From positions 62,001-126,000 of the forward strand of contig NIVC01002443.1 in assembly GCA_002269645.1 (NCBI GenBank): a stretch of DNA of 64,000 nucleotides. The letters are read 5' to 3'. Below, piece after piece: positions 11,447 to 61,985 of the stretch; position 1 is the first letter of the stretch; each line of letters opens with the position of its first letter. The notes under the pieces are model-generated. The model did no database searches. It saw nothing but the letters and a program-made list of their open reading frames with translations, and was not told the DNA's origin. The position numbers and the translations under genes were made by a program. This DNA comes from Macrostomum lignano (Eukaryota).

Positions 11447-33233
<21,787 letters not shown>

Positions 33234-35610: not shown

Positions 35611-36479
35611 CAAATCTTGCAAGTGCAAATGCAAATGTATAAATGCAAATGTAATGCAAATGTAATAGTTGCAAATGCAAATGTATAATACATGTATTAC
35701 CAGTTAAGTTAGGCAATTTCAAAGTATCGATTTTAATATATAGACTACACATACATTTACCCGAAAATTTTAAAGAGCTGAAAGAACTTTTCAGACTTCA
35801 ATTAAACAAGTTAGAGAAATCTGACCCACTACTGCACTTAAACAAAAGGTGAACAGCCAACAAGCACTCTTTGGCTGCCTAAACTGGTTAGGATGTACGT
35901 GGCATGCCAAAGAATGTACATTGTATGTACAGTGTACACACTGTTATTGGTCAGCATTTTGAAGCTAGAACCAATCGGAATCTAAGGAGCTGAAATCAAT
36001 GAGACAAGGGTAAAAAGTGAAAGGGTAAAAACGTCGGATAGTCATGATATGTCATCGTGCACTTCTATAGCAAGCCTCATGGCTCCAGGAGCGTAATTGA
36101 CAAACTGGCTTGATAGTTCCGGCAATAAAACAGCAGTCATATTACCACCGTAAGTTGTATAAGATTATATTTAACAACTTCTATCTCTGACTTTTCCCAT
36201 ATACTAATTCTCTAAGATCATTTTTTATATACTGAAAATGAGTTGTCTGTGAGCATATGCTATTGATTTTTAGCTAAAACGGCTCAACCGATTTTCTTCA
36301 AACTTGCACCATTCGATTGGAAATTTTCCCGTGACGTCTCAATAATGCGAAGATTTTCGCTTTTATGCTTTAATAGTTAACCAATTGCCTATTTAACAAC
36401 TATAGACTCACTATAATTACATGGATCTAGTAAAACTTACATATTACTCCCTATTTATCTAAATGTACCTGAATTATGC

Positions 36480-36695
36480 CTAAGCTCGAATATATCTACG
36501 AGTATCTATATCTATCACTCATCAACAATATTTTATACATCTACCTACCTACCTATCCATCTACCTACCTATCCATCTACCTATACCTATCCATCTACCT
36601 ACCCATCCATATACCTACCTATACATCTACCTACCTATCCGTCTACCTACCTATCCATCTACCTACCCATCCATAAACCTACCTACCTACTACCT
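36480..36695. repeat. (CTAC/CTAT)n low-complexity tract upstream of the first TRPA exon acceptor
   Basis: Direct inspection. Confidence 0.8.
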
Positions 36696-36717
36696 ATGGT
36701 TCCTATTTCGCAGGAAA

Positions 36718-39700
36718 ATGTCCAATGTGAACAGTTGTGAAGAATCTGACGCGTCTAGTTACAGTGACGCAAGTGTAGATTCCGATTCAGAAGAACCCAA
36801 GCAAACAAGCAAACAGCAAAATATGAAAGAAGAGCTGGACGTAAGTTTGGACGCCGGACAACAGCGAAAACAGGTGAGAATTCAACTATTAAATACCTTT
36901 ATACGTACGTAAAGTACTTATATTACTTTAAATTCTTAAGCAATTACGGTTATAGATTGGATTGCAAATTCTATTAGTTTACGTTGTGATTAATAAGATC
37001 AGTTTATACTAGCAATCTACGCCCCCATTGGGGAGCCAAAAAATGCAATACACGTTTTTTTAATAAGCTACATGTATCCTTGAAATCTTAAAAAATCTCC
37101 TGTCAAACCTTGTAAGCCTTGACATGTCAGTAATTCCCCCCCCACAAGCTTTAACATATCAACTTCCCCCCTTGACATCTCAGCAACGCCCCCAATAAGC
37201 CTTGGAAATCTAAAAATATCTGTCAACCTTCTAACCCTAACCCTAGCTTACCCTAACCCTAACCCTAGCCTAACCCTAACCCTAACCCTAACCCTAACCC
37301 TAACCCTAACCCTAACCTAACCCTGAAGCATTGACATTTCAGTAATTCTCTCTAAGAGTCATTATAGCACTACTACAGCATTAAAGCGATTCCCTGCAAG
37401 CCTCGACATCGTAGGGATTCCCAAATGAATCTAGAAGATTAGATTAGATTATATAAGATTAGATTAGATTAGTATATAGGATTAGATTAGATTAGATTGT
37501 ATTGATTGGATTGGATTAGATTAGACTAGATTCGATTAGATTAGATTAAATTAGATTAGATTAAAATAGATTAGATTAGATTAAATTAGATTAGATTAGA
37601 TTAGATTCGATTCGATTCATTTAGATTAGATTAGATTAGATTGGATTGGATTGGATTAGACTAGATTCGATTCGATTAGATTAGATTAAATTAGATTAGA
37701 TTAAAATAGATTAGATCAGATTAGAATATATTCGATTAGATTATATTATATTATATTGGACGGGACAAAATTAGATTAAAATAGATAATATTAAAATAAA
37801 TGAGATTTGAATGCATTAGAATAGATTGGATTATATTAGATTAGATAAAATAGATTAGACTAGATTAGATTAGATTAAAATAGCTTTCACTAGATTAAAT
37901 CAGTGTTCACCAGTCTGAGTTTAATTCAATGTTCGCAGATTTTTCACGCAATCATCGATTCTATGAGAGTCACTACTGATCAATCATCCATTCTATGAGA
38001 GTCACTCCTGATCAATCATCCATTCTATGAGAGTCACTCCTGATCAATCATCCATTCTATGAGAGTCACTCCTGATCAATAATCGGTTCCATGAGAGTCG
38101 CTTCTGATCAATCATCGATTCTATGAGAGTCACTCCTGATCAATCATCGATTCTATGAGAGTCGCTCCTGATCAATCATCGATTCTATGAGAGTCACTCC
38201 TGATCAATCATCGATTCTATGAGAGTCACTCCTGATCAATCATCGATTCTATGAGAGTCACGATCCTGATCAATCATCGATTCTATAAAAGTCACTCCTG
38301 ATCAATCATCGATTCTATGAGAGTCACTCCTGATCAATAATCGGTTCTATGAAAGTCACTCCTGATCAATCATCGATTCTATGACAGTCACTCCTGATCA
38401 ATCATCGATTCTATGAAAGTCACTCCTGATCAATCATCGATTCTATGAGAGTCACTCCTGATCAATCATCGATTCTATGAGAGTCACTCCTGATCAATCA
38501 TCGATTCTATGAGAGTCACTCCTGATCAATCATCGATTCTATGAGAGTCACTCCTGATCAATCATCCATTCCATGAGAGTCGCTTCTGATCAATCATCGA
38601 TTCTATGAGAGTCGCTCCTGATCAATCATCGATTCTATGAGAGTCACTCCTGATCAATCATCGATTCTATGAGAGTCACTCCTGATCAATCATCGATTCT
38701 ATGAGAGTCACTCCTGATCAATCATCGATTCTATGAGAGTCACTCCTGATCAATCATCGATTCTATGAGAGTCACGATCCTGATCAATCATCGATTCTAT
38801 AAAAGTCACTCCTGATCAATCATCGATTCTATGAGAGTCACTCCTGATCAATAATCGGTTCTATGAAAGTCACTCCTGATCAATCATCGATTCTATGACA
38901 GTCACTCCTGATCAATCATCGATTCTATGAAAGTCACTCCTGATCAATCATCGATTCTATGAGAGTCACTCCTGATCAATCATCGATTCTATGAGAGTCA
39001 CTCCTGATCAATCATCCATTCTATGAGAGTCACTCCTGATCAATAATCGATTCTGTGAGAGTCACTAGTGATCAATAATCGATTCTGTGAGAGTCACTAC
39101 TGATCAATCATCGATTCTATGAGAGTCACTCCTGATCAATCATCGATTCTATGAGAGTCACTCCTGATCAATCATCGATTCTATGAAAGTCACTACTGAT
39201 CAATAATCGATTTTATGAGAGTCACTCCTGATCAATCATCGATTCTATGAGAGTCACTACTGATCAATCATCGATTCTATGAGAGTCACTCCTGATCAAT
39301 CATCGATTCTATGAGAGTCACTCCTGATCAATCATCGATTCTATGAGAGTCACTCCTGATCAATCATCGATTCTATGAGAGTCACTCCTGATCAATCATC
39401 GATTCTATGAGAGTCACTCCTGATCAATCATCGATTCTTTGAGAGTCACTCCTGATCAATCATCCATTCCATGAGAGTCGCTTCTGATCAATCATCGATT
39501 CTATGAGAGTCGCTCCTGATCAATCATCCATTCCACGAGAGTCGCTCCTGATCAATCATCGATTCTATGAGAGTCACTACTGATCAATTATCGATTCTAT
39601 GACAGTCACTCCTGATCAATCATCGATTCTATGAAAGTCACTCCTGATCAATCATCGATTCTATGAGAGTCACTCCTGATCAATCATCGATTCTATGAGA

Positions 39701-42700
39701 GTCACTCCTGATCAATCATCGATTCTATGAGAGTCACTCCTGATCAATCATCCATTCCATGAGAGTCGCTTCTGATCAATCATCGATTCTATGAGAGTCG
39801 CTCCTGATCAATCATCGATTCTATGAGAGTCACTCCTGATCAATCATCGATTCTATGAGAGTCACTCCTGATCAATCATCGATTCTATGAGAGTCACTCC
39901 TGATCAATCATCGATTCTATGAGAGTCACTCCTGATCAATCATCGATTCTATGAGAGTCACTCCTGATCAATCATCGATTCTATGAGAGTCACTCCTGAT
40001 CAATCATCCATTCCATGAGAGTCGCTTCTGATCAATCATCGATTCTATGAGAGTCGCTCCTGATCAATCATCGATTCTATGAGAGTCACTCCTGATCAAT
40101 CATCGATTCTATGAGAGTCACTCCTGATCAATCATCGATTCTATGAGAGTCGCTCCTGATCAATCATCGATTCTATGAGAGTCACTCCTGATCAATCATC
40201 GATTCTATGAGAGTCACTCCTGATCAATCATCCATTCTATGAGAGTCACTCCTGATCAATCATCCATTCTATGAGAGTCACTCCTGATCAATCATCGATT
40301 CTATGAGAGTCACTCCTGATCAATCATCGATTCTATGAGAGTCGCTCCTGATCAATCATCGATTCTATGAGAGTCGCTCCTGATCAATCATCGATTCTAT
40401 GAGAGTCGCTCCTGATCAATCATCGATTCTATGAGAGTCACTCCTGATCAATCATCGATTCTATGAGAGTCACTCCTGATCAATCATCGATTCTATGAGA
40501 GTCACTCCTGATCAATCATCCATTCTATGAGAGTCACTCCTGATCAATCATCGATTCTATGAGAGTCACTACTGATCAATCATCGATTCTATGAGAGTCA
40601 CTCCTGATCAATCATCGATTTTATGAGAGTCACTCCTGATCAATCATCGATTTTATGAGAGTCACTCCTGATCAATCATCGATTCTATGAGAGTCGCTCC
40701 TGATCAATCATCGTCTCAATGAGAGTCACTCCTGATCATTCATCGATTCTATAAGAGTCACTCCTGGTAATCGATTCCATGAGAGTCACTCCTGATCATC
40801 GACTGCATGAGAGTCACTCCCGATCATCGACTGCATGAGAGTCACTCCGGATCATCGACCCATGAGAGTCACTCCTGATCAATCATCGATTCTTTAAGAG
40901 TCACTCCTGATCAATCATCCATTCCACGAGAGTCGCTTCTGATCAATCATCGATTCTATGAGAGTCACTACTGATCAATCATCGATTTTATGAGAGTCAC
41001 TACTGATCAATCATCGATTCTATGAGAGTCACTCCTGATCAATCATCGATTTTATGAGAGTCACTCCTGATCAATCATCGATTCTATGAGAGTCACTCCT
41101 GATCAATCATCGATTCTATGAGAGTCACTACTGATCAGTAATCGATTCTTTGAGAGTCACTCCTGATCAATCATCGATTCTGTGAGAGTCACTCCTGATC
41201 AATCATCCATTCCATGAGAGTCGCTTCTGATCAATCATCGATTCTATGAGAGTCACTCCTGATCAATCATCGATTCTATGAGAGTCGCTTCTGATCAATC
41301 ATCGATTCTATGAGAGTCACTCCTGATCAATCATCGATTCTATGAGAGTCACTCCTGATCAATAATCGATTCTATGAGAGTCACTCCTGATCAATCATCG
41401 ATTCTATGAGAGTCGCTTCTGATCAATAATCGATTTTATGAGAGTCATTTCTGATCAATGAACTTGTTCAAATATACTTGCGACATTCTTAAGCGCATGT
41501 TTAATGGGAATAAAACAGATGTCTAATATACGTCTAATTTCTAACCAAACACAGCTTTTACTCGCCTACGATTGGAGCAATAAAGCGACTAAGAAAGGCT
41601 GCAAATGTTGTAATCCGGTAAGGCAAAAAACTATAAATTTTTAATTTACTAATTTAGTGTGCTAACGACTCTAGTTTTAAGCCCCCTCAGATGAAATGGC
41701 GCCCTTCAGATGAAATGGCGCCCCTCAAATTAAATGACACCCCCTCAGATGAAATGGCGCCCCCTAAGATGAAATGGCGCCCCTCAAATGAAATGGCGCC
41801 GCCTTAGAAGAAATGGCGCCCCCAGATAAAATGGCGCCCCCTAAGATGAAATGGCGCCTCTTTAAATAGAATAGCGCCCTCTTAGATATAATATTGCCCC
41901 CTCAAATCAATGAGAGTCCCTCATCATTGAATCCATGAGAGTCACTCGTGATCATCCACCCACGAGAGTCATACAAAATTCAAATATACTTGCTACACTT
42001 AGATACGCATGTATGACATGAATAAGTCAGATGACTAAAATACGTCTAAATTCTAACCTATCACAGGTTTCAATCTGCGTGTCGGCGAAGGTGAACGAGA
42101 AACTGGAAAAACAGCCTTGGAAGAATATGCAGGTATGGCAAAAATCGTTGCATGTTTTATTTACTAATTTAATGTGCTAAATACTCTGCCCGCCTCACCA
42201 CAGTTGAAATGGCACCCTTAGGATGAAATGGCACCCCTTAAAATCCATGAGAGTCACTCCTGATCATCCATCACATGAGAGTCACTCCTGATCATCCACC
42301 ACGTGAGAGTCACTCCTAATCATACACCACATGAGAGTCACTCCTAATCATCCACCACATGAGAGGCACTCCTAATCATCCACCACATGAGAGTCACCCC
42401 TAATCATACACCACATGAGAGTCACTCCTAATCATCCACCACATGAGAGTCACTCCTGATCATCCACCACATGAGAGGCACTCCTAATCATCCACCACAT
42501 GAGAGTCACTCCTGATCATCCACCACATGAGAGTCACTCCTAATCATCCACCACATGAGAGGCACTCCTAATCATCCACCACATGAGAGTCACCCCTAAT
42601 CATCCACCACATGAGAGTCACTCCTGATCATCCAACACGTGAGAGTCACCCCTAATCATCCACCACATGAGAGGCACTCCTGATCATCCACCACATGAGA

Positions 42701-45700
42701 GGCACTCCTAATCATCCACCACATGAGAGTCACTCCTGATCATCCACCACATGAGAGTCACTCCTGATCATCCACCACATGAGAGGCACTCCTAATCATC
42801 CACCACATGAGATTCAGCCGTTGAAAACAAGACTTTTTACTCGTAACGACTCAAACGCATCAAACGCGTCCAAGAATCGTTGTGCTAGCGTTTAACTTTC
42901 TACTAGCTCAGTAGGCTAGTCAAAGCGCAATTACTCGTAGATTGTAATAGGCTAAGACTGAGTGCCCGATTAAAACGGTACTTAAGCCAAGAAGCTTCCT
43001 GGAGTCACTAGCGTCGCCTCAGAGTCGTTTCAGACGCGTTGCGGATGACAGGTCAAATTGGAAAGAAGTGATTCGAAATAACTCTAAAATGACAAGATGT
43101 CACGGTTAAACTATAAGGATGGACAGGCAAAGAGGCAAACAAAGCGATGTTTGACGAGCAAGAGACGGCAACAGCGCAACGAAGCATTACGAGCGTAAAG
43201 GGGGAGCAGCAAACTGACGCCCCAAAAGTTACGGGCAATTCTCTATTTTTATTTCGTTCAAAAAATTGAGTGCAGAGTGGCGAGAGTGGCGAGAGCGCAA
43301 AGGCCACTCGGCGGTATAAATAGGCAGGCCTCCCCCAAATTGGCAAGCCACTGAACGTGGCGGAGTAATGGACGCATACAATTCGCCTAAAAGTCGCAGA
43401 AGAAGCGCTTTAGCGTCATTGTAAAATCGTTACTGCATCGCATCTGAGTCGATGAGCATGCATTTATCTATTCGCCCAGAAATTACGATTCAACAGTCTG
43501 TTTAAGGCCAGTAGTAACGACTCTGTAACACGTCCTAAGCGCCTCAGAAGTGACGCACTAACGATCTCCAGTGACGCTAAAGCTCTTCTTCTGCGACTTT
43601 TTTAACGACTGCAGAACGCCGCCGAAACGCCGGAAATGTGACTTTATTTCATCAAGCGACGCAAATGCGCTTCAAACACAACTCAGTGACTCTAATGCCA
43701 CTCTGGAACGCCTCAAATCAAATATACTTACGACACCTGACATTAGTTACATACGCATGTTTAACACGCATAAGTCAGATGACTAAAATACGTCTAAATT
43801 TTAATCAATCGCAGATTTTACGCGAATCGGCAGCTCCGGTGAATGAGGGACAGAAAACTCTGTTTTGGAAGAATATTCCGGTAAAGCAAATATCATTGCA
43901 TTTTCTATTTACTAATTTAGTGTGCTGTGACCATAGTTGTGCCCCTACCTTAGATGAAATAACGCCCCTCTAATGGAATGGCGCCGCCTCAAATGAAATG
44001 ACACCGCCTTAAATGTGATGGCGCGCCTTTAGATAAAATGGCGCCCCTCGAATGAAATGGTTACGCCCAGACGTTATCGATTGATATAAAAATGTAATTA
44101 ACTAATATACAAATTAATTGCAGCCCAGTCAAAACGCCAATAAACTGCTTACTAGCAAAGACAGCCACGATGTGACGCCGCTGATGCTTGCCGCTTCCGC
44201 GAAAGGAAGCTTGCTGAAACATCTACGAGGTGAGAGACTGGATCATTAACAGTTTGAATATTTCTTATCTTTAAGCATAGCCCAAGTAGAACTGAAACAT
44301 TGACACTTGCTATATGCTTGTAGAGAAACTCGAAGAAGAGGCTCTGAAGAAAGCGATCAAAATGAAAGATCACGACGGGAACACCATGCTTCACTACGCT
44401 GTAGTTAGCAACGAGGCGGAGGTATTAAGTGATTTTTACTATCTTCATTCAAATACATGGCCAATTTACTTCATCTATTCTCCTAAAATTTTTTTACAGA
44501 AAATAGAATTGCTAGTAGGTCGTGGAGCTGACATCAATGCAGAAAATGTAAGAGCTTTCTTGTACTCGTATTTTTTTAAAGCATCGATCGGTCGGCGAAC
44601 TTCGGCCTGTGGGTCCTTTGAAATTTCATAATAGCAGTTTATCCGCTCAAGGTTTGTCTCTTCTTTCTTCCCTCTTTCCCCGTTAAAAACGTTACCGTGA
44701 CAAGAATCGCAAAAAATCCTTGCAAGCAACTCTCTAGTGTCTCTATAGTTACTCTCGATGCGACGGAGAGGCGATTGTTGCTCGTCACGTGAGAGTTGCA
44801 GAATCGTAAGAGACGCGAAAGAGTCGTCCAAGATAATTGTCGGTTGGCTCATTGATTCAGTGATTCTACAGCGACTTTAGCACGCCTCACAAAACGACTA
44901 TACGGTTTCATTATAGTCGGTTATACCGTCGCCCCAGAGTCGTTTCAAAGTCGCAGAAAATAAAAATATTCAAATTGACTTTTGGGCAACTCTTTGACAT
45001 ACTTTTTGGCGACTTTTACCGGTGCTTCTTGTCATTTTCGAGTCGTTTAGAGTCACCTCCTTCCTATTTTACTTTTCATCGGCAACGACTTTGAAAGGAC
45101 TTTGGTCCGGTGATGCAGTGACTCTGGGACGCTTCTTGGTGCTTCTATTGTTGGTACCGTTTTCATCGGGTTCTGTCCCGCAAGCATTACGCTAGATTCT
45201 CTATGTCTTAACGATATGAGCTGGAAGTGCATCTTCATAACTACTCACTGTAATAATCATATCAAACCCGTATTTCAGAGCGACAAATCCACGCCTCTGC
45301 TGATTGCGTCGGCTCTCGGTCACACAAAATCGGTGATCAAACTGTTAAAGCTCGATGCTTCAAAGTATACGAAGGACAAGCAGGGCAGAACAGCCATGCA
45401 TTGGTGAGTAGAGTGGCGCACTGCTTTGCACAGAGTCTTGCATTGTCAGTCTTGCATTTTGGCTCAATAAACTCCTGTCACCAATCTGTGCAGACTTGCC
45501 AAGCCTCCAAAATTTATCAGCACGTCGACCACGTCAACCATGTGTCTGCATCAGTTCTGACTTCTTTTGGTCACTGGCCTTCAACCAAACGTGGCTTCTG
45601 GATCTTCAACGGGTGGCAAATTTCTCTGTTATCTCTGATCAAGGCTCGATAGTGGGCAGTCCTAAACTGCTATAGCTTCTCAAGCATTTAGTCGTTTATC

Positions 45701-48700
45701 CAGTCGTCGTCGCCTCCTTTTACGACCCATTTTACGAAAATTTAACGGTTTCATACATGACAGTGGATTAAATCAAATTTTCGTGGTTTCGTTCCTTCGA
45801 GACTCTCTCTGCAAAAAATTCATTTCAACTTACAGTATAATTATCAAAACAGCTTCTCAATTAAAATATTAATACCCAATGAGTACTAGTAGTAATACTC
45901 GTATATATAAGAGGACTTTTAACACCTTTATTTCCTTTATGATAATGAAATAGTAATATATTGAATAGCCTCACTATAGTCATATTTCAGTATTAAATAA
46001 CTTTTGAGAGCTTCAGAATATAAAAGCGTATGATGACAAATCTCAATCTACTGTCCATAAGTATCTGGTGTCACCTGTTGAATGTCCAGAAGCTCCGTCT
46101 GGGCGAAGGCCGGTGACAAAAGAAGTAACGATGTATATTTTTTGTTAAATTTTATCTTTGTGTTATCAATTTATCCAGATTTAGAAGTAATTTAAAATCA
46201 TGTTTTACGAGTCTTTTTGACATTGTGATATTTTCAGTTCTACTTCAAGTAACTCGTAATTTCATTTTCGCTTGTTGTTTATTTAATTAAAGGTGCTTCA
46301 GGCAGCAAGACACGGATATTTACGACGCTCTGATGAAAGAGGTAAATTTTTTATTTGACATTAAAAGTTTGCTACACGATTTATTAATAGGCTTTCAAAT
46401 TGCTTCAGGGGCACGGCACCATGGGACAGGGGGACATGTACATGTACCAGCTCTAGACGGTTATGCCAATGCTCTGTGCCCCTTAGTGAACCTGCTATGA
46501 AAAAAAATTGCTTTACAGCACCAAAATCAGTGCCTGCAGAGCCTAAATGAGTGTCTGCACAGTCAAAATGAGTGTCTGCACAGTCAAAATGAGTGTCTGC
46601 ACAGTCAAAATGAGTGTCTGCACAGTCAAAATGAGTGTCTGCACAGTCAAAATGAGTGTCTGCACAGTCAAAATGAGTGTCTGCACAGTCAAAATGAGTG
46701 TCTGCACAGTCAAAATGAGTGTCTGCACAGTCAAAATGAGTGTCTGCACAGTCAAAATGAGTGTCTGCACAGTCAAAATGAGTGTCTGCACAGTCAAAAT
46801 GAGTGTCTGCACAGTCAAAATGAGAGCTAGCGACAACACAAATTCTCAATATAATGTACATGTACATGTAGCATTCTTTGGCTTTGTCCCCCGCACCATA
46901 AAATCCATGGGGACGCCTCTGAATTGCTTCGAACGTTGACATTCAAAACGCCACTATTGAAGGCCAGCGAGGAAGAAAACGACGCCGAATTCATGACGCC
47001 ATTTCACTGGGCCTGCCGACAAGCCAGAAAAAAGGAGGCCATGCTGATGGTAAAGAAGAATTCGAAACTGCTCGGAAAAGTGGACGCCCAATTGAGAACT
47101 GGGCTGCACTGGGCTGTGCTGGCGAACAGCACTGGCCTGGTCAAGGCGCTGCTGCAGTTGAAAACTGAGCCCAACCAACCAGCTACTGTTCTATCGAAGT
47201 GCTTGAACGCTGGAGACTTTCAGGGCAAAAGTCCGCTGCACTACGCCGCAGAAGCTGGTAACTTAAATGTGAGCAGGCAACTGTTTAAAATTTTTGTCAT
47301 GTACATGCAGATTTGTTATTGCCATGCACCAACAGTCCTTGGTGGGCGCCCCTGTCTCATCGATGGGCCTCTAAATTTTGGTGGCGCTTCCCTGTCTCTT
47401 GTCAGGCGCACCGGTTTCTTTGTTGGCGCCCCCTGTCTCTTTGTGGGCGTCCCTGTCTCTTGATGGGCATCCCTGTCTCTTGGTGGCCCCCCTGTCTCTT
47501 GGTGGGTCCCCCTGTCTCTTGATGGGCACCCCCCCCCCCTGTCTCTTGATGGGCGTCCCTGTCTCTTGGTGGCCCCCTGTCTCTTGGTGGGCACCCTTGT
47601 CTCTTGGTGGGCACCCCTGTCTCTTGGTGGGCACCCCTGTCTCTTGGTGGGCACCCCTGTCTCTTGATGGGCACCCCCTGTCTCTTGGTGGCCCCCTGTC
47701 TCTTGGTGGGCACCCCTGTCTCTTGATGGGCACCCCCTGTCTCTTGATGGGCACCCCCTGTCTCTTGGTGGCCCCCTGTCTCTTGGTGGGCACCCCTGTC
47801 TCTTGATGGGCACCCCTGTCTCTTGATGGGCACCCCTGTCTCTTGATGGGCACCCCTGTCTCTTGATGGGCACCCTCTGTCTCTTGGTGGCCCCCTGTCT
47901 CTTGGTGGGCACCCCTGTCTCTTGATGGGCACCCCCTGTCTCTTGATGGGCACCCCCTGTCTCTTGGTGGCCCCCTGTCTCTTGGTGGCCCCCTGTCTCT
48001 TGGTGGGCACCCCTGTCTCTTGATGGGCACCCCTGTCTCTTGATGGGCACCCCCTGTCTCTTGGTGGCCCCCTGTCTCTTGGTGGGCGTCCCTGTCTCTT
48101 TATGGGCGTCCCTGTCTATTTATGGGCGTCCCTGTCTCTTTATGGGCGTCCCTGTCTCTAAGGTGGGTGCCTCTCAGTCTCTGTGAGCGCTACTACCCCT
48201 GTCTTAGGCGGGTGGATGCCACGACCAAGAGGAGGCAAACGTTGAACTTCACAAACTGCAAAAGCTTTCGTTCACTAATACATGTACCTACTTAATGGGA
48301 GCTAAAGTTAGATCGATTGCAAAACTTTTCGTCCCAGCCTAATTTATTTGAAAACAGAGCGAAATGTTTTACAATTTGGACGAATTCGATTGCAACTAGG
48401 CATATTTTCGTTTTCTTGCGGGCAAAAAAATCTCAAGCTGTCTTGTTTCTTAGGTCCAGACCAGGGGTTGGAAAGCTGTTTTACTTCCACAATTTCAATG
48501 GATCCGAGGGCCGGATAGAAAGTCTTCACGGGCCAGATTTTGCCAACCCCTTAGTCTAGAAGTCTTTAGCGAGACACCCGAGTGTCAAGCAGTTCCCACA
48601 TTGTTGTCAATATCCAATAGCAATGGTCGCTTTCAGAAGTTGTTTTCAAATTTTGAAGAATGTGTATTATCTGAAACTAAGAAATCAAACTAAATCCTTG

Positions 48701-51700
48701 CTTATCCGCTTAATTTGGCACAGATCTTCAAAGACCTAGTCGACTGTGGCGCTAAACTAACGGCAATCGACAACGACTGCAGGACTCCATTGCACTTGGC
48801 CGTTAAAATGGGCCACGCGGACTTTGTGAAAAAAAGCTTGGATTATCTTGAAAAGTTGAAGACAGAAAGCTCAGATAAAGAAACGAAAGAGCAAATGTTG
48901 TTGAAGCAGCACATGTCGATCCAGATTCGGGCGATGGAGCATCGGGACATCAGTGGCATGACCTGCCTTTTGATTGCAGCGGAGCAGGGACACCCGATGC
49001 TATTCGAACATCTTCTAAAATTCAAAGCTGATTTTACTGCCAAGTAAGCATATATTTTAACTACTCGTACATTTGAAAAGTTTATAAAGTATCACAAGAG
49101 TGCTTTTACATGCTTAATGATGCTTTGTCGCTTAGAGACAACATTGGTCGCAACGCTCTGATGCTTAGTGTTGGCGGTGGGCATCGAGACATTGCTAAAA
49201 AAATTCTCGACAAAGGCTTGGATGTCAATGCCACTGACGTCAACCAGGTGAATTTTGTCTATGTGTATGTTTTTTTCTGTCTTTGCTTCTGTCTTGGCTT
49301 CAAGTTTGATTTCTTGGATTTGGTGTAGCTGTCTTGTTTTCTGTCTTGGTCTTTGTCTTGGTATCTGTCTTGGATTCAAGTTTGATTTCTGCCTTGGTAT
49401 ATCTGTCTGTTTGTCTGCCTTACCTATCATCATTTTGTTGAAAAAAATCCTCAAAGCCATTTTCCACACGCCAGAACACGGCTCTGCACTATGCCTGCAA
49501 GCACCCTGACCCCGTGAGCTGTCTGGACTTTCTCTTGGAGCACGGCGCCAAGCTGCAGCAGAATGGCATCGAGGAAACTCCACTTGACGTGGCGTTGATG
49601 AATCAAAACGAACGGGCTATTCAACTTTTTCTATCCGAGAAGTAGTGAGTTAAATGTAAAATATCGAGTCAATTCTTCGAAACTGCGTTTATTTATTTAC
49701 TATCAATACTTTTCAATTGGAAAACCATTTACAGTTTTGACTACACGATGTCCTACAGAAAGGCTGACGGCTACAGTCACATGAAGGACTTCATTAAACA
49801 CATGCCAGATGCTGCCATGGTGCGTTCAGCGTTTTCGTTGAAATAAGTAATAAATTAACTTTATTGTTCTCAGAGCAAGTAGTCTACAGTAAAGCTTTTA
49901 CAACTAGGTTTGAGCAAACTGGCAGAAAAGAAAAAATGATCAGATCCATTAAGTTCCCTTTCGTGCCAAACTGTTTGCTTCGAACTCTATTAACAAAAAA
50001 CAACTGCTATGCTGGATGTCTGAAGGGTTCGGTTCAAGCACACTGCCTAATGACAATGATGGTTGAAGAATGGCATGAGAGATCGAGAAACTTGACCTCT
50101 AGCTGTTTAGGTTGCGTATTTTCCAGTTCCAGTCCAATGAGACTTGAAGTTGCCACTTTCCAGCTGGTTCTAAACCGGTCTGTTACGAAGCATAGTAGTG
50201 AACATGCTGACTTCCTGGTAAGTTAAAAAAGCTATTACGCTCGTAACCATCACAAAAGTTTAACCAGTTAAATTGAAATTCTAGTATTTCCCTTTCTTTC
50301 AATCAGGTTGAGTACAACTTTGACCACCTGGATCCGGGTCCTGACGAGGCTCCAACGCACAAACATCGCAGCAAGGCTCTGTTGAAAATAGTAGAGTATA
50401 AACGCATTGAGTTGCTGAAGCATCCGGTTACCACGTCTTTATTGGAAAGCAAAATGCAAGTTTATTTATCATCATAGTATTCATTCATAGTATTTATTTT
50501 TTATTATCATCCTTCGTGTATGTTGTTATGTTGTTATGCCAGTTATTTTTGCTTCTACGTGTTCGATCTAGTTTAGTTTAACTTTTTCAACCCAGCTTCG
50601 CAGATTCAAAATTGATTTCGCTTGTTAAGCAGATATTTTGCCAGATTTTTTGTGCAGACACGACCCGGTTTTTTGCAATCTAAAGAGTTTAAAAATTCTA
50701 AAAGGTTAAAGGATGAAGTCTCCATCCAAACTTTATTCAGCAACACAAATTTTGCGATTTAGATTTACAAATGCCAATGGACCTAGGAAAGTTGTGTACA
50801 ACTGACTTTTAAAAGCCTATCATATCACTTCCTAATTGCAGAGGGATTACTGGCTTCATATTCAGTTTGGATATTATGCTGTATCTCCTGTTTCTTAGCT
50901 GCCTAACCGCCTTCGTTGTTTTGAACATGCCTCCTAAGACGTCGACGCCTTTTACCACGGCAATCTGCTTCAACGACAGTAACAAAAGCAGCTTTGGTTG
51001 GACAAACAACTTTTACCGACTCGTAAGTCAGTAATATATACTGGTCTTCAGATCATACTTAGAATATAAATTTTATAACATTTTTCTAATTTAATTTGAA
51101 ACGGCACCATCATTAACAGGAGGACGCTAAAGAACCGTTTAAATCACGCCTTCCTGTAGCTATCACATTAGGAATTCGGTTGTTTGTCGGCTTTATCAAA
51201 ACTTTATTGAAGGTAAAAAAACTGTCTGTTTATTGCGCAAGATTCAAGAGTACTTTTTTGCAACTTACCCCTGCACTTTGCAGCTTTATGATTGGAAAAA
51301 TAATTGTTCATCCTAAGAATTTTCTTTACGCAACTCTTTACGCGTTAACAATTGCTTTCATCCTACCGATTGGCTCCTGTTCGCATTCCTACAACTCTGC
51401 CTTCGGATGTTCAGCGTAGCCATGGCCTGGAGTCTACTTTTGTTCATCTTTGAATAGTGAGTCAGTTGATTTTGTCAAATACATTGATTTTTATTTTTGA
51501 ATACTACTCATAAATGCGATCGTAATTGCGCTTTTAGTTTTCCCGTCTGGGGAATCTATCCGGCTATGTTTCAACGAGTGGTGACCTCGCTGCTGAAGGT
51601 GCTGCTAATGCATCTCTACTTGTTCGTTGGCTTCAGCCTGGCCTTCTGCATCGGCATGGGCTCTACCGTATGTCGCCATAGCTAATTTTGTATAATATTG

Positions 51701-53572
51701 TAATAAATAATACCTGTATTAGAGTATCTCAAAAAATCCATTTTATTTGATTCATTGAAGCATTTTTTATATTACTAGCGTGGTTTTGATAATCAATACC
51801 TTTTATTAAAACATTTTAGGATATGTTTGAATACTTCTTCTTATCGCTGTTAAAGACATTCGATATGACTGCAGGCGAGCTGGATTACGTCGAAATTTTC
51901 TTTGAGAAGACTAATAGTTTCTCGGCTGAAATGCGGGTTGGCATTCTGCTGTTTTTTATTGTATTTGTCATTATTATGCCGATTTGTCTAGTCAACATGC
52001 TGGTGAGTAGTCTCATGCTTTGTGAGTAGTCTCATCCTGTCGTGAGTAGTCTCATCCTGTAGTGAGTAGTCTCATCCTGTCGTCAGTAGTCTCATGCTTT
52101 ATGAGTAGTCTCATGCTTTGTGAGTAGTCTCATGCTTTATGAGTAGTCTCATGCTTTATGAGTAGTTTCATGCTTTATGAGTAGTCTCATGCTGTAGTGA
52201 GTAGTCTCATGCTGTAGTGAGTAGTCTCATGCTGTAGTGAGTAGTCTCATGCTGTAGTGAGTAGTCTCATGCTGTAGTGAGTAGTCTCATGCTGTAGTGA
52301 GTAGTCTCATGCTTTCGTGAGTAGTCTCATGCTGTAGTGAGTAGTCTCATGCTGTAGTGAGTAGTCTCATGCTGTAGTGAGTAGTCTCATGCTGTAGTGA
52401 GTAGTCTCATGCTGTAGTGAGTAGTCTTATGCTGTAGTGAGTAGTCTCATGCTTTCGTGAGTAGTCTCATGCTGTAGTGAGTAGTCTCATGCTGTAGTGA
52501 GTAGTCTCATGCTGTAGTGAGTAGTCTCATGCTGTAGTGAGTAGTCTCATGCTGTAGTGAGTAGTCTCATGCTGTAGTGAGTAGTCTCATGCTGTAGTGA
52601 GTAGTCTCATGCTGTAGTGAGTAGTCTCATGCTGTAGTGAGTAGTCTCATGCTGTAGTGAGTAGTCTCATGCTGTAGTGAGTAGTCTCATGCTGTAGTGA
52701 GTAGTCTCATGCTTTCGTGAGTAGTCTCATGCTTTCGTGAGTAGTCTCATGCTTTCGTGAGTAGTCTCATGCTTTCGTGAGTAGTCTCATGCTTTCGTGA
52801 GTAGTCTCATGCTTTCGTGAGTAGTCTCATGCTTTCGTGAGTAGTCTCATGCTTTCGTGAGTAGTCTCATGCTTTCGTGAGTAGTTTCATGCTGTAGTGA
52901 GTAGTCTCATGCTGTAGTATGTATTCTCATGATGTAGTGAATAGTCTCATCCTGTCATGAGTATTCTCATGCTTTAGTGAGTGGTCCTATGCTGATGACT
53001 ATCAACCGCCTGCTTATAGCTCATTGAGTTCTTTTAACTTCCAGGTCGGTATCGCTGTTGGCGACATTGATAAACTAACGAAAGTGGCCAGTCTCAAGAT
53101 GGAGCACTATCGAGTAAGTTAACACGGATGCATTTGTGAAACAAAACTTTAAACAGAAAAAAATTTGCTTGTTTATGTATTGAACGCTAGCTTTGACACT
53201 TGTCTCAAATAAAGGATTGACTTTCGAAATCCCGAATCTTTGCAAAGCTATATTGTATCATATTTGCCGTTTCTAATTCATTTGCAGATCAATATAATTT
53301 ATGATTTGGAGGATTTCCGAAGGAAATTCTGCAAGTACATTTTCGGTTGCCTGAGCTGCTGCATATGCGCGCACCAGAGGTCGTATTCATTCAAGATGAA
53401 TTCAACAAACAAAGCAAAGCAGTGCTGTGTCTGTTGTTGTTATGTCACGGACTTTTGCACCTGTTTCTACACTTTTAAATGGTTTAAACCTTTTCGAGAC
53501 CAAAAGCGTTATAGAAAGTGGCTAAATGAATACGGCGGCAAGATCGAGAGGGACCCGCTAGCAAAGGACTGA
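36718..53572 (+). CDS. TRPA1: TRPA1-like transient receptor potential channel (about 12 ankyrin repeats + 6 TM); contains apparent frameshifts as given
   Basis: Exons: 36718..36840 (or ..36873), optional 41555..41617 / 42067..42132 / 43815..43880, then 44124..44229, 44324..44421, 44500..44547, 45279..45403, 46293..46341, 46963..47268, 48724..49043, 49136..49247, 49475..49644, 49735..49819, 50164..50217, 50307..50455, 50842..51022, 51120..51212, 51284..51456, 51538..51667, 51820..52002, 53045..53113, 53288..53572. Ankyrin motifs TPLMLAA, GNTMLHYA, RTGLHWA, GKSPLHYA, RTPLHLA, NTALHYA. TRPA hallmarks HMPDAAM-LVLN, VEYNF, RIELLKHPV, WGIYPAMF, SLLKTFDMTAGELDY, MPICLVNMLVGIAVGDI. Orthology within TRPA is not established. 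Confidence 0.85.
37231..37324. repeat. Interstitial telomere-like (CCCTAA)n tract
   Basis: About 15 units of ccctaa (TTAGGG on the minus strand), a few degenerate. Confidence 0.85.
37435..37890. repeat. (ATTAG)n pentanucleotide satellite
   Basis: Direct inspection. Confidence 0.9.
37949..41459. repeat. 32-bp satellite, about 110 copies (3.5 kb), in the first TRPA intron
   Basis: Unit gagagtcactcctgatcaatcatcgattctat. Confidence 0.97.
41555..41617 (+). CDS. Candidate cassette mini-exon X1 of the TRPA gene (63 nt, phase 0/0): LLLAYDWSNKATKKGCKCCNP
   Basis: acacag|CTT...CCG|gtaagg; open frame; flanks homologous to X2 and X3. Confidence 0.6.
42067..42132 (+). CDS. Candidate cassette mini-exon X2 (66 nt, phase 0/0): VSICVSAKVNEKLEKQPWKNMQ
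   Basis: tcacag|GTT...CAG|gtatgg; open frame. Confidence 0.65.
42245..42812. repeat. 28-bp satellite related to the 32-bp satellite
   Basis: Unit gagagtcactcctaatcatccaccacat; shares gagagtcactcct(g/a)atc with the 32-mer. Confidence 0.93.
43815..43880 (+). CDS. Candidate cassette mini-exon X3 (66 nt, phase 0/0): ILRESAAPVNEGQKTLFWKNIP
   Basis: atcgcag|ATT...CCG|gtaaag; open frame; shares VNE.....WKN with X2. Confidence 0.65.
46406..46921. mobile_element. Non-autonomous hAT-like element (516 bp) carrying a 21-bp minisatellite
   Basis: Perfect 8-bp TSD AATTGCTT (46398-46405 and 46922-46929). Imperfect TIRs caggggcac..ccatgg and ccatggggacgcctctg. Internal array (gagtgtctgcacagtcaaaat)n at about 46548-46823. 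Confidence 0.8.
47340..48150. repeat. About 20-bp GC-rich minisatellite in a TRPA intron
   Basis: Unit gggcacccctgtctcttgat / ...ttggt. Confidence 0.92.
48462..48552. mobile_element. Short hAT (Charlie-like) MITE
   Basis: TIRs caggggttggaaa and ttgccaacccctt, internal gagggccggata motif, degenerate TSD gtccagac/gtctagaa. A related end occurs at 63350. Confidence 0.6.
52003..52990. repeat. 19-20-bp minisatellite starting at the 5' splice site of the TRPA S6 exon
   Basis: Unit gtgagtagtctcatgctgta / ...gctttc, roughly 45-50 copies. Confidence 0.95.
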
Positions 53573-54747
53573 CGACATTGCTAACTTCTTCGGACTACGC
53601 TAAGGTCAACTTTAATTGAAACATAATTTATATTCCCAATTAAAAACTGAAGCGCGCAAACTAAAACAAAAGTATATAAGAAGACTAAATTTCAGGAAGC
53701 TGTAAAACTACACACTTATGTTCCACATTTTAACAAAAAACAGCAATTTCTGGCGCTTGTCAGTAAATTTTTAATCTCTAGCTGTTGTATTTATACTATT
53801 AATATTAGCGAAATATTTATAGATAGCAAAAGTTTCTGATTTTTGTAAATACGCTCGCAGTAATTAATTGTTATTCAATCGTTTAATATAAAGTCATCTC
53901 ATTTAAAAAACATATCATAAAAGACTGTTTCTATCCAAAAAATGCTTTGCTGGTACAACAGCACGAGTTAAAAATAGTGTTATTGTGGTGCGGTTAGCTA
54001 AAAATTCTAGATTTAAAATACATCCATTTTTTCTTTTGAAATTTATAACTAAGCTAACCTCTATTTGTACTTTCTAAAGCATATTTGTCGTTTTTTCGTG
54101 ACTACGCAATGTTTTTGTTATTATTGATGAAAAGCATTAAAACAGTTTTTAAAGACTGATAAATATTTGGTTTTCTTTCCTAATATTTTAATCCCGCTAA
54201 TGCGTCGTTTAAATTTTTTTCATAGTCGTTCTTTTCGTTATTTGGAGTTGATATTTGTTATTTTATTCCCCCTATAAAATATTTTTTTGTTTTAAATGCA
54301 CAGTACCTTAGCTTACAATATACGAGCTGTAGTGTTGCATTTTATTGTTTCAAATTATATTTAAATATGATTATTTTCCGGCTTTGTATGGACGGAAGTG
54401 TAACTTGTCCGGTATATTTAAATACTTAGCGAATGAGGCTAGTAGAGTACTAGAGTACTTTTATTTGCTATAGTAAAAGAAATACAGTTCTCATTTTTCT
54501 TATATCTTATTATTAAATGAGTACACTTAAAGACTGATATTATAACATACCACGTTTTCAATATTGCCTAGACTGGTTGATCTACATCCAAGACTGCCAC
54601 ACGCATGAATTAAAACATATGAGTAGAATTTCTTGGAAACAGAACCCAAATGAAACCAACTAGCATATACGATCGATTTAGAACCCTGCGATACTCGTAT
54701 AATACTTTACGCACAAAGTTAAACAGCTAAAGCGGATGTCAAGGGGG

Positions 54748-54900
54748 TTGTAGCCTATAATGGTTAAAAGTGTCGGACTCGCGACTTTAAGGTCGGGGGT
54801 TCGATTCCCGATCCCACACGGAGCAGTTTGTGTCCTTGAGCAAGACACTTAAACTCTGCATTGCTTCAGTTCACCCAGCTGTAAAATGGGTGCCAGAATT
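54748..54900 (+). mobile_element. tRNA-derived CORE-SINE copy
   Basis: Box A-like tagcctataatggttaa and box B ggttcgattcc, then gtgtccttgagcaagacacttaaactctgcattgcttcagttcacccagctgtaaaatggg (MIR-CORE-like). Confidence 0.8.
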
Positions 54901-55126
54901 AGTTGTCCTTGAATGGAAATAGTTAGAAAAAATTGCTACAAACAATACAATGCATTGGGTGTACACTATAGTAACTATAATATTGATTCGCTTGCAAAAT
55001 AGCAAGTGGAAGCTATAATCGATTGAAACACCCCGAGTCGGAATATAAAGAGTCTTAAGCCTTTCAGGCTCTGCATACACAGATATAATGGCAGAGTTAG
55101 CTACTAACTAGTTGTGTTGCAAGCAG

Positions 55127-56472
55127 ATCCCAGACTTAAAGCAGTCAATGCCAAACGACCAGTCACCACAGCAGCGCGACCAGCTGCAGACAGCCTCTGA
55201 CAATCTTGAACTGGCTATCGAGGCCATCGACAAGCACTTTCTCAATCGGCTTCGTGACAAGTCGACCGTGGCAGTCGATTCGGGCAGTTCCCCCAGCGCC
55301 AAATCCAAATCTGGTGGCAGCAAGAAGGAGAAATCGCTTCTGCCCGTGTACAAGCCCACCTTGGCGCATCTGGCCAGGTTTCACAAGCTCCAGCGTCTTT
55401 GCGATGGTCTCGAAAAGTTTGCCGAAGTTTTTCGTGAACTCCATGGAAGGCGTGGCGACGTGCCCAGCCAGCTGGAGGGACAGGTGAACTCGTTCGGTGG
55501 TCAGGCCCAGTCCGTGAGTTGGAGGGACTGAGGAACAGGATGAAGGGTTACTGAGACAGATTGACACTGAGACAGATTGACACTGAGACAGATTGACACT
55601 GAGACAGATTGACACTGAGACAGATTGACACTGAGACAGATTGACACTGAGACAGATTGACACTGAGACAGATTGACACTGAGACAGATTGACACTGAGA
55701 CAGATTGACACTGAGACAGATTGACACTGAGACAGATTGACGCTGAGACACTGACAGATTGACACTGAGACAGATTGACACTGAGACAGGTTGACACTGA
55801 GACAGGTTGACACTGAGACAGATTGACACTGAGACAGACTGACACTGAGACAGACTGACACTGAGACAGATTGACACTGAGACAGATTGACACTGAGACA
55901 GATTGACACTGAGACACTGACAGATTGACACTGAGACAGATTGACACTGAGACAGGTTGACACTGAGACAGATTGACACTGAGACAGACTGACACTGAGA
56001 CAGACTGACACTGAGACAGATTGACACTGAGACAGATTGACACTGAGACAGATTGACACTGAGACAGACTGACACTGAGACAGACTGACACTGAGACAGA
56101 TTGACACTGAGACAGACTGACACTGAGACAGATTGACATTGAGACAGATTGACACTGAGACAGACACAAACACTCAGACAGACAGAAGCGCAGGACCAAT
56201 TTCCACTGTCCCCCCAGCTCACGGCCCAGATCCGAGACCAGTGGGCCACCAAGAAGGCCGCACTTGACGCGGCCTACTGCCTGCAGTACGTGAAGGCCTT
56301 GGAGTTCAAAATCAGCGAGCTGCACAAGCTCTGCTCAAGACTGCTGGACACCTGCTTCGATTTGTTGAGATCGGCGAAAAGTGCCGGCGTGAGTCGTCTG
56401 CCGATCAGTCAGGAGTTGGTGATGGAGATTGCCGAAGGCTTGCCTGAGAAATACACGGCTGAGACTGGATAG
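55127..56472 (+). CDS. Unidentified two-exon alpha-helical protein (about 214 aa from ATG 55148), or extra 3' exons of the TRPA gene
   Basis: Exons 55127(ATG 55148)..55513 and 56194..56472. Phase-0 GT-AG intron filled with a 16-bp repeat. GC-rich, gene-like codon usage. No family recognised. Confidence 0.6.
55549..56185. repeat. 16-bp minisatellite
   Basis: Unit tgagacagattgacac. Confidence 0.95.
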
Positions 56473-56539
56473 GGTGTGAGTGGGGTTTTGTGAGTGTGAT
56501 CATCTGTGAATTCATATGAGTGCATGTGTGTTAGTTATT

Positions 56540-57402
56540 GTTACTCATGAGTAAGTTTATGAGTGAGTTCATGAGTGAGTTTATGAGTGAGTTCATGAGT
56601 GAGTTTATGAGTGAGTTCATGAGTGAGTTCATGAGTGAGTTAATGAGTGAGTTAATGAGTGAGTTAATGAGTGAGTTAATGAGTGAGTTAATGAGTGAGT
56701 TAATGAGTGAGTTAATTAGTGAGTTAATAAGTGAGTTAATGGGCCGTATGCAGAAAGCCTAGTCCAGACTAGCTAGTCCGGACTTGTGTAGTTCAGTCTA
56801 TAGTCTATGGTCTAGCTAGCCTAGTTCTGCTATAGTAGACTGGTCTAACTTTGCGTTTCTGCATACCAAATCCAAGTCCAGACTAGCTTTTCAAGACCGG
56901 ACTACCCTAGACAGAGCTTTCTGCATACGGCCCAATGAGTGAGTTCATGAGTGAGTTCATGAGTAAGTTCATGAGTGAGTTCATGAGTGAGTTCATGAGT
57001 GAGTTTATGAGTGAGTTCATGAGTGAGTTCATGAGTGAGTTAATGAGTGACTTCATGAGTGAGTTCATGAGTGAGTTTATGAGTGAGTTCATGAGTGAGT
57101 TCATGAGTAAGTTCATGAGTGAGTTCATGAGTGAGTTAATGAGTGAGTTCATGAGTGAGTTCATGAGTGAGTTTATGAGTGAGTTCATGAGTAAGTTCAT
57201 GAATGAGTTAATGAGTGAGTTAATGAATGAGTTCATGAGTGAGTTAATGAGTGAGTTCATGAGTGAGTTCATGAGTAAGTTCATGAGTGAGTTCATGAGT
57301 AAGTTCATGAGTAAGTTAATGAGTGAGTTCATGAGTGAGTTCTTGAGTGAGTTCATAAGTGAGTTCATGAGTGAGTTCATGAGTAAGTTCATAAGTGAGT
57401 TT
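56540..57402. repeat. 12-bp minisatellite interrupted by a MITE
   Basis: Unit atgagtgagttc / ...tta / ...ttt. Confidence 0.93.
56741..56933. mobile_element. PIF/Harbinger (Tourist-like) MITE, 193 bp
   Basis: Perfect 18-bp TIRs gggccgtatgcagaaagc / gctttctgcatacggccc; 3-bp TSD AAT on both sides. Confidence 0.85.
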
Positions 57403-61902: not shown

Positions 61903-61985
61903 ACCTTGTGACACTGACTTGACTCACAAACTAATCTTGAATCACCATGCTTTTTTTCGAGTTTTAACTCCCTGTGGGGAGGAAG

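Follow-up and report, generated by a model that had tools for sequence, protein, structure and literature searches.

Three tandem copies of a small phase-0/0 exon in the ankyrin region of a Macrostomum lignano TRPA gene

The DNA we analyzed, a 64-kb stretch referred to here as the window, is identical in sequence to Macrostomum lignano contig NIVC01002443.1. It holds a TRPA-family gene whose coding sequence, PAA57810.1 (BOX15_Mlig019302g1), maps onto it exactly as 19 exons, with GT-AG introns save for one GC-AG intron at exon 16. The annotation of this record was derived from RNA-seq assemblies, and ab initio prediction was not used (PMC5730564). Pfam Ank families identify an N-terminal ankyrin repeat domain in the host gene (E = 2e-51), and the host genes share only 25-28% identity with annotated TRPA1 proteins of other phyla. 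The annotated coding sequence ends at residue 759, within the transmembrane region, and exons homologous to the remaining channel lie after it. Compared with its homeologue, the window copy has +1 and -1 indels (1 nt each, at 51301 and 51404/51405) that lead to an early TAA, and PF00520 was unmatched in a rough composite. With ankyrin exons missing, a frameshift and an early stop, this copy looks degenerate. A literature search found no mention of Mlig019302.

Exons 2-4 of PAA57810.1 are three mini-exons, X1, X2 and X3 (Table 1), each set in one of three homologous blocks (~41465-41680, 41977-42190 and 43715-43935) that can be aligned over ~210 nt. The blocks had been proposed in a sequence-only reading of this DNA, and direct reading, repeat finding (families D7, D8, D9 and D11) and motif counts bear them out: two conserved intron motifs occur exactly three times each in the 64 kb, against chance expectations of 0.00 and 0.02. 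Coordinates and the exact mapping of PAA57810.1 likewise confirm that the mini-exons are stop-free, preceded by AG and followed by GT, in phase 0/0 and multiples of three in length. The annotated frame is the sole plus-strand frame open across all three. Significant homology, lengths of 63, 66 and 66 nt and identical phase make them tandemly duplicated exons. Exon 1, at both of its possible donors (after 36840 and 36873), and exon 5, which starts at 44124, are also in phase 0, so that any combination of the mini-exons does stay in frame, as had been claimed.

Table 1. Exons, conserved intron flanks and repeats at the triplicated locus (positions in the window)
Feature	Position	Strand	Details	Source
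Exon 1	36718-36873	+	ATG at 36718; 52 codons; donor CAG/gtgaga; alternative phase-0 GT after 36840	exact PAA57810.1 mapping
32-nt satellite array	37949-41459	.	110 copies; fills intron 1	TRF
Block 1 upstream conserved flank	41467-41554	+	TCAAATATACTT; GCATG at 41495 (-60); CTAAT/CTAAC branch-point-like motifs; CAG acceptor	
Mini-exon X1 (annotated exon 2)	41555-41617	+	63 nt; LLLAYDWSNKATKKGCKCCNP	
Block 1 downstream conserved flank	41618-41665	+	GTAAGGCAAAA...TTTACTAATTTAGTGTGCT	
20-nt GATGAAATGGCGCCCC array after block 1	41681-41893	.		TRF
Block 2 upstream conserved flank	41979-42066	+	GCATG at 42007 (-60)	
Mini-exon X2 (annotated exon 3)	42067-42132	+	66 nt; VSICVSAKVNEKLEKQPWKNMQ	
Block 2 downstream conserved flank	42133-42180	+	holds TGCATG at 42149-42154 (+17 of X2)	
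28-nt satellite array	42246-42816	.	20 copies; akin to 32-mer of intron 1	repeat finding and TRF
Non-satellite insert	42817-43714	.	internal 33-nt inverted repeat 43389-43421 / 43569-43601	
Block 3 upstream conserved flank	43717-43814	+	GCATG at 43755 (-60); 10-nt insertion specific to block 3	
Mini-exon X3 (annotated exon 4)	43815-43880	+	66 nt; ILRESAAPVNEGQKTLFWKNIP	
Block 3 downstream conserved flank	43881-43928	+		
20-nt array after block 3	43954-44060	.		TRF
Exon 5	44124-44229	+	PSQNANKLLTSKDSHDVTPLMLAAS...; phase-0 start; return of confident ankyrin fold and of Pfam Ank matches	

A repeat array had been said to follow each block; 20-nt arrays do follow blocks 1 and 3, but after block 2 there are two copies of the unit. 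The non-satellite insert between blocks 2 and 3 has a related inverted copy at 45015-45170 and is probably a dispersed-repeat insertion; it accounts for the longer spacing of these two blocks. Such surroundings invite the explanation that the blocks are themselves an exonised transposable element or other dispersed repeat, or contain no genuine exons, their flanks being conserved because of the element. Satellites surround the region, two families of them bracketing every block alike; a dispersed-repeat fragment lies between blocks 2 and 3, and more than half of the M. lignano genome is repetitive (PMC5730564). Yet the flank motifs have no further copies in the window or in the 29 kb of the homeologous locus (NIVC01000867.1) that we examined, which starts ~8-13 kb downstream of the expected block position, and no extra copy of a block, as a genome-wide repeat would have it, was found in these 93 kb (64 kb + 29 kb). 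Further, the ends of the blocks form no inverted repeats, and an Rfam scan of 36000-45500 returned no match, so the flanks are no known snoRNA, miRNA or other RNA. Exon position and phase match a genuine ankyrin exon of the paralogue, and X1 finishes an ankyrin helix in intact copies of the gene. We consider an origin of the blocks as a mobile or dispersed element very unlikely.

The relation of the mini-exons to the ankyrin domain is seen in two UniProt proteins from other gene copies, A0A1I8HWJ3 and A0A1I8JLU6. Both read ...NIIK/LLLAYDWNNKATKKGCKCCNP/VSIC.../ILRES.../PSQN, and the X1-X3 peptides differ at one residue only between gene copies. Because these copies have 124 further ankyrin-repeat residues between exon 1 and X1, X1 provides the end of a repeat, and the whole cluster falls within the ankyrin domain. 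The earlier placement of the exons, immediately ahead of the first ankyrin repeat, applies to the window copy only, where tblastn of A0A1I8HWJ3 residues 53-176 found no exons for the 124 residues. The A0A1I8HWJ3 gene was unplaced on any contig searched. In the window model, the exon 1-X1 junction may have arisen artificially, from intact-copy transcripts mapped onto the window copy.

In the AlphaFold2 model of A0A1I8HWJ3, residues 177-181 finish a helix, residues 185-240 have pLDDT <50, and a confident ankyrin fold returns after 241. Only the first ~5 residues of X1 complete a helix, in the intact copies the second helix of an ankyrin repeat, and the model suggests that the X1-X3 insert is disordered. 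Its low pLDDT may only mirror few homologues in the alignment. Pfam found no domain in the X1-X3 peptide, whose units, at 21-22 residues and without the TPLH helix 1, are not ankyrin repeats of the 33-residue helix-turn-helix kind. At the same position, between homologous flanking exons, alignment places a single 105-nt phase-0/0 exon, ILLGHKANPQLKELDGTSVLHLPSRRNNLQLCQIL, in the tandem paralogue.

Conservation among the blocks is concentrated outside the coding sequence. Invariant columns in the three-way alignment, which compares paralogous copies and not species, make up 64% of the upstream flank, 32% of the exon, 71% of the downstream flank and 9% of the adjacent spacer (exon vs flanks, Fisher tests, p = 2e-5, 0.003 and 0.07). 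The exon peptides had been described as diverged; the exons are less conserved than their intron flanks, yet they can still be aligned. GCATG is invariant at -60 of all three acceptors, and the TTTACTAAT element stands alongside it as a candidate splicing element of the blocks. Folded as a consensus, the blocks give a weak structure (-9 kcal/mol over 263 columns), and convincing covariation is absent. A 6-bp pairing of GGUAAG, at the 5' splice site, with UUUACU is seen in this fold and is unsupported.

The same pattern could arise from positive diversifying selection on the exon peptides, each copy having neo-functionalised after duplication (X1 through its CKCC cluster, for instance), instead of from constraint on the flanks. 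Between X2 and X3, dN is ~0.63 and dS ~0.35 (ratio ~1.8), and dN exceeds the divergence of the flanks, but with 22 codons and ~14 synonymous sites this estimate is very noisy, and the near-identity of the peptides between gene copies (one residue) indicates no ongoing rapid change. In the spacer adjoining the flank, 9% of columns are invariant, no more than expected at random; neutral sequence is thus saturated, and the exon, with 32%, remains under constraint. We find this explanation improbable.

The sequence-only reading had proposed a mutually exclusive or combinatorial switch and had named constant co-inclusion as the finding that would speak against it. All three deposited models, PAA57810.1, A0A1I8HWJ3 and A0A1I8JLU6, carry X1, X2 and X3 consecutively, which is evidence from models and not from reads, and protein database searches, including a full phmmer scan, found no deposited protein without any one of the three. 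A bacterial repeat protein returned by that scan was rejected as a spurious match. Because every deposited model includes all three, the exons look like an ordinary triplication and not a proven splicing switch: the tandem exon triplication is real, and the switch is unsupported.

Strict mutual exclusion after the manner of Dscam or srp would put exactly one of X1-X3 into each mRNA through competing RNA pairings. The exons are homologous, share their phase, have similar lengths and were duplicated along with part of the intron, a process proposed as the origin of selector sequences (PMC6071210). The three deposited models, with all three exons, contradict such exclusion at the level of models, and no mechanism that would enforce it was found. 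With lengths divisible by three, co-inclusion triggers no frameshift; the introns between the mini-exons, at 449 and 1682 nt, impose no steric block; and all sites are GT-AG, with no incompatible sites among them. Nor was docking/selector pairing found: no docking site emerged from duplex energies, which lay within ~2 SD of shuffles whether computed against intron 1, against the 42817-43716 spacer or against the pre-exon-5 region, ungapped helix enumeration yielded 10-nt A/U-rich helices only, at chance level, and the consensus fold is the weak one described above. We give mutual exclusion hardly any credence.

The mini-exons might instead be regulated cassettes, mostly co-included in bulk RNA and skipped singly or combined in particular cell types, such as sensory neurons. 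Their flanks, including GCATG at -60, would then bind splicing regulators, and up to eight in-frame insert variants could result. Symmetric exons, all phase 0/0 and multiples of three, and conserved flanking introns are what such cassettes show; here the flanks lie far above the exons in conservation among paralogous copies, not species, and the spacer next to them shows no more than random conservation. The better-conserved flanks and the GCATG at -60 hint at regulated splicing, with X2 having an additional TGCATG in its downstream flank. In C. elegans unc-52, which has three in-frame cassette exons in tandem, a GCATG upstream represses the inclusion of one of them (PMC1500816). Because the Mlig_3_7 pipeline retained only isoforms at least 75% of the major isoform (PMC5730564), minor or cell-specific skipping would be lost from the annotation. 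On the other side, every deposited protein found keeps all three exons; GCATG is a 5-mer with a background of 0.9 per kb in the 64-kb window, and its conservation may just be general flank constraint; and constitutive small exons in long repeat-rich introns may also need strong definition signals. Regulated cassettes strike us as possible but doubtful. We rate as unlikely the more particular proposal of combinatorial cassettes under one intronic module (GCAUG at -60, duplicated branch-point-like motifs and a downstream UUUACU complementary to the 5' splice site) that would vary a flexible cysteine-containing insert in sensory cells.

What we take to be the probable explanation is that X1-X3 are a tandem triplication of a small phase-0/0 TRPA-gene exon, spliced in consecutively within the ankyrin domain. 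The ancestral exon would be the one finishing an ankyrin repeat (end of helix 2 and loop), as in the paralogue's single exon, and would have been triplicated in tandem together with ~90 nt of the preceding intron and ~50 nt of the following one. X1, X2 and X3 would follow one after another in the mature mRNA, replacing one canonical ankyrin repeat, and the product would be an irregular stretch of ~65 residues, midway through the ankyrin domain and probably flexible. The flanks, judged from their motifs, may act as splicing signals that define small exons within large satellite-filled introns: branch-point-like CTAAC/CTAAT, a CAG acceptor, a GT donor with an A/U-rich element, and GCATG at -60. 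The three deposited models suggest constitutive inclusion in all cells. A combination of symmetric exons with flanks that surpass them in conservation usually marks regulated alternative exons, and this observation runs against our explanation.

Like tandem exon duplications in other animals (PMC9013439, PMC6071210), the cluster consists of adjacent homologous exons of near-equal length and the same phase, with part of the intron co-duplicated. In typical clusters, by contrast, exons are more similar than introns, the reverse of the Macrostomum blocks, and the copies substitute for one another, whereas X1-X3 are co-included. Docking/selector clusters (Dscam exon 6, srp, 14-3-3zeta; PMC6071210) share with the blocks a repeated conserved intronic element upstream of each duplicated exon, but X1-X3 come without a complementary docking site or enforcing mechanism and occur together in the deposited models. 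Closer in layout are exons 16-18 of C. elegans unc-52, tandem in-frame cassettes regulated by intronic GCATG and TCTATC (PMC1500816); these, too, are three consecutive symmetric exons derived from a repeat domain, with conserved intronic elements including an upstream GCATG. The unc-52 exons differ in that they encode whole Ig modules and their skipping was shown experimentally, whereas X1-X3 encode an ankyrin-repeat fragment only and no skipped isoform of them is known.

Drosophila TrpA1 reportedly has alternative N-termini and mutually exclusive exons between the ankyrin domain and the pore (Kang et al. 2012, Zhong et al. 2012). Both genes encode TRPA-family channels whose cytoplasmic N-terminal region is variable at the level of exons. 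Unlike the alternative promoters or first exons and the one mutually exclusive pair of Drosophila, whose functional differences have been demonstrated, the M. lignano gene has a triplicated internal exon without demonstrated alternative use.

If inclusion is constitutive, the locus would be a tidy case of ankyrin-domain remodelling by partial-repeat exon duplication, and its value would lie mainly in the correct annotation of the M. lignano TRPA paralogues. If inclusion is regulated, a compact splicing-control module would be flagged by the inverted pattern of conservation, and the gene would make the modular tuning of a nociceptor-type channel tractable in M. lignano, an animal that is transparent and capable of transgenesis.

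Open frames on the + strand yield a composite protein matching PAA57810.1 ('hypothetical protein BOX15_Mlig019302g1', 759 aa, Macrostomum lignano), which is encoded by NIVC01002443.1 (GCA_002269645.1); over the 34.6 kb compared, this record equals the window base for base, with record position 88718 corresponding to window position 26718. Exact spliced mapping resolves PAA57810.1 into 19 exons on the window, of which exons 2, 3 and 4 are the mini-exons X1, X2 and X3; the intron after exon 16 has a GC donor (AAT/gcaagt, 50455/50456) and all others are GT-AG. Pfam ankyrin matches are strong in this host gene, and annotated TRPA1-like proteins of hemichordates, echinoderms, arthropods and cnidarians show 25-28% identity over ~76% of its length. 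Its paralogue Mlig025935g2 (1172 aa, with PF00520; 43% identical) begins inside the window at 63955 (first 15 residues at 63955-63999, 100% identity), so the two are tandem neighbours and a second TRPA gene lies ~10 kb downstream. A tandem TRPA paralogue pair is also present on NIVC01000867.1.

Direct reading and repeat finding (families D7, D8, D9 and D11) confirmed three homologous blocks, each consisting of a mini-exon and its conserved intron flanks. In 64 kb there are exactly three copies of the upstream motif CAGATGWCTAAWATACGTCTAA and exactly three of the downstream motif TTTACTAATTTARTGTGCT, against 0.00 and 0.02, respectively, predicted from shuffles, and the annotated frame is the sole + strand frame open in all of X1-X3. 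The blocks, splice sites and 0/0 phases described in the sequence-only reading are accurate and non-random, and the cluster is a genuine tandem exon triplication, already within deposited gene models. A 20-nt GATGAAATGGCGCCCC array follows every block, and a 28/32-nt CATGAGAGTCACTCCTGATCA-type array immediately precedes blocks 1 and 2; at block 3, a ~900-nt non-satellite insert stands between the 28-nt array and the block. This insert and a 570-nt satellite expansion account for the wider spacing of blocks 2 and 3. The insert has an inverted relative in a later intron and probably represents a dispersed or MITE-like repeat. It is very unlikely that the blocks themselves are copies of a dispersed repeat or transposable element; their motifs and both satellite families are absent elsewhere in the window and from the 29-kb homeologous locus, and inverted repeats do not bound the blocks. 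Two further open frames, pol-like and integrase-like, are LTR-element debris typical for the M. lignano genome.

Features of the mini-exon cluster, its flanks and its surroundings (window positions unless marked L002, the homeologous locus)
Feature	Position	Strand	Detail
X1	41555-41617	+	63 nt, AG/GT bounded, phase 0/0
X2	42067-42132	+	66 nt, AG/GT bounded, phase 0/0
X3	43815-43880	+	66 nt, AG/GT bounded, phase 0/0
Exon 1	ATG 36718, end 36873	+	phase 0; second phase-0 GT after 36840
Exon 5	start 44124	+	phase 0
Upstream flank			three-way invariant columns 64% (63/98)
Exon			three-way invariant columns 32% (22/68)
Downstream flank			three-way invariant columns 71% (34/48)
22-nt spacer before 20-mer array			three-way invariant columns 9%
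12 nt before unit			three-way invariant columns 0%
Flank elements			branch-point-like motifs CGTCTAAW and TTCTAAC, CAG acceptor
GCATG	exactly -60 from all three acceptors		a further TGCATG lies at +17 of X2
A/U-rich TTTACTAAT element	28-36 nt downstream of each donor
Possible hairpins	41618-41665, 42133-42180, 43881-43928
Block 2-3 insert	42817-43714		internal 33-nt inverted repeat, 94% (43389-43421 / 43569-43601)
Inverted fragment related to insert	45015-45170		73% identical
Intron 1	36874-41554		(CTAACC)n 37231-37324, (AGATT)n 37436-37877, 32-nt satellite 37949-41459 (110 copies, 3.5 kb)
Long tandem arrays in/around gene	46500-46830, 47290-48200, 52100-52850, 55166-56334, 56534-57549, 3600-4900		several yield long spurious open reading frames
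Satellite in paralogue's equivalent intron	L002 11830-12000
Retrotransposon pol-like frame	58558-61899	+	1114 aa
Integrase-like frame	1811-2467	-	219 aa
Upstream neighbour	26718-33233		annotated IFT140-like WD40/TPR protein (1482 aa product)

The sequence-only reading set the mini-exons just before the first ankyrin repeat. This placement is an artefact of the truncated window copy, as two UniProt models from other M. lignano gene copies, A0A1I8HWJ3 and A0A1I8JLU6 (same cluster, 97% mutual identity), have 124 additional ankyrin-repeat residues between exon 1 and X1. Their junction into X1 reads ...GQTAVHIACNRNDDNIIK/LLLAYDWNNKATKKG..., from which it follows that X1 contributes the loop of an ankyrin repeat and the last part of its helix 2. 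Between homologous exons ending ...NHEEVVQ and beginning TNDTALISCRDKHGVTPLM, the paralogue has a lone 105-nt phase-0/0 exon that encodes ILLGHKANPQLKELDGTSVLHLPSRRNNLQLCQIL; the intron positions of this exon are those of NIIK/X1 and X3/PSQNANKLLTSKDSHDVTPLM, and in an alignment of 21 TRPA homologues the same slot holds one canonical ankyrin repeat. The cluster therefore lies within the ankyrin domain and derives from an ankyrin-repeat exon that was triplicated and shortened. Its units have 21-22 residues and lack helix 1 (TPLH motif), and the X1-X3 peptide has no Pfam domain match. In an AlphaFold2 model of A0A1I8HWJ3 (24-sequence alignment, mean pLDDT 76), residues 177-181 finish a confident helix, residues 185-240 (the remainder of X1, together with X2 and X3) have pLDDT <50 where the alignment is without homologues, which itself lowers confidence, and a confident ankyrin fold returns from exon 5. 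The predicted structure suggests that X1-X3 probably form an irregular, flexible insert of ~65 residues.

A mutually exclusive or combinatorial switch among the mini-exons, as had been proposed, is unsupported by the transcript-derived models: PAA57810.1, A0A1I8HWJ3 and A0A1I8JLU6 hold all three exons, the latter two carrying them in succession with a single difference, S>N in X1. An exhaustive phmmer search of 1.84 billion representatives, run with the N-terminal 132 residues, gave A0A1I8HWJ3 as the only true relative, and protein database searches found no deposited protein lacking any of X1, X2 and X3. The Mlig_3_7 GenBank annotation derives from RNA-seq assemblies, not ab initio prediction, through a de novo transcriptome and StringTie merged with TACO, then TBONE and TransDecoder (PMC5730564). 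TACO was run at isoform-frac 0.75 (PMC5730564), so minor isoforms would have dropped out. The mini-exon lengths are all multiples of three, the introns between them are 449 and 1682 nt, and every site is GT-AG. Duplexes of the flanks with intron 1, the 42817-43716 spacer and the pre-exon-5 region fell within ~2 SD of shuffles; helix enumeration gave nothing beyond chance-level 10-nt A/U-rich pairings, the block consensus fold is weak (-9 kcal/mol), and Rfam returned no match. Because lengths, introns, splice sites and pairing searches offer no feature that would enforce exclusivity, we reject strict mutual exclusion.

Counted over all alignment columns, the blocks share 72-80% pairwise identity in their intron flanks and 51-65% in their exons (exon versus flank, Fisher tests: p = 2e-5 for blocks 1 and 2, 0.003 for blocks 1 and 3, 0.07 for blocks 2 and 3). 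The low invariance of the spacer and pre-unit columns indicates that neutral sequence is saturated, and hence that constraint acts on the exons and more strongly on the flanks. Flanks that outdo exons in conservation are the opposite of the pattern described for typical duplicated-exon clusters (PMC6071210), and are the only unusual aspect of this one. Between X2 and X3, dN/dS is ~1.8, from 22 codons only. Intronic GCATG is known to regulate splicing. In C. elegans unc-52 it was shown to repress one of a set of three tandem cassette exons (PMC1500816). Here its fixed position is a lead and no more, since the window has 0.9 copies of the pentamer per kb. The GGUAAG 5' splice site could pair with a conserved UUUACU ~28 nt downstream in a 6-bp hairpin, with one pair broken in block 2, and this pairing is without statistical support. 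The block 3 upstream element ATACTTAC is identical to the 8-nt 5' end of U1 snRNA, also without statistical support. Flank conservation keeps alive the idea that X1-X3 are skipped in particular cell types, which we nevertheless consider unlikely.

The exons for the 124 ankyrin residues of A0A1I8HWJ3 and A0A1I8JLU6 are not in the window, where repeats and satellite fill intron 1. The homeologous locus (L002 1-10000) aligns with window positions 49001-64000 at ~80-96% identity, and against it (51284-51420 versus L002 2599-2725) the window has gained a T at 51301 and lost a G at 51404/51405. These indels create a TAA at 51314-51316 that terminates the 759-aa deposited CDS partway through the transmembrane region. 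The homeologue is in-frame through this stretch, and downstream of the TAA the window still has exons homologous to the rest of the channel. The indels are either a pseudogenising pair or homopolymer assembly errors. Given the missing ankyrin exons and the early stop, the window copy resembles a duplicate in decay, provided that these differences are not errors of assembly. The argument that the mini-exons tune a sensory channel fits, if at all, the intact gene copies.
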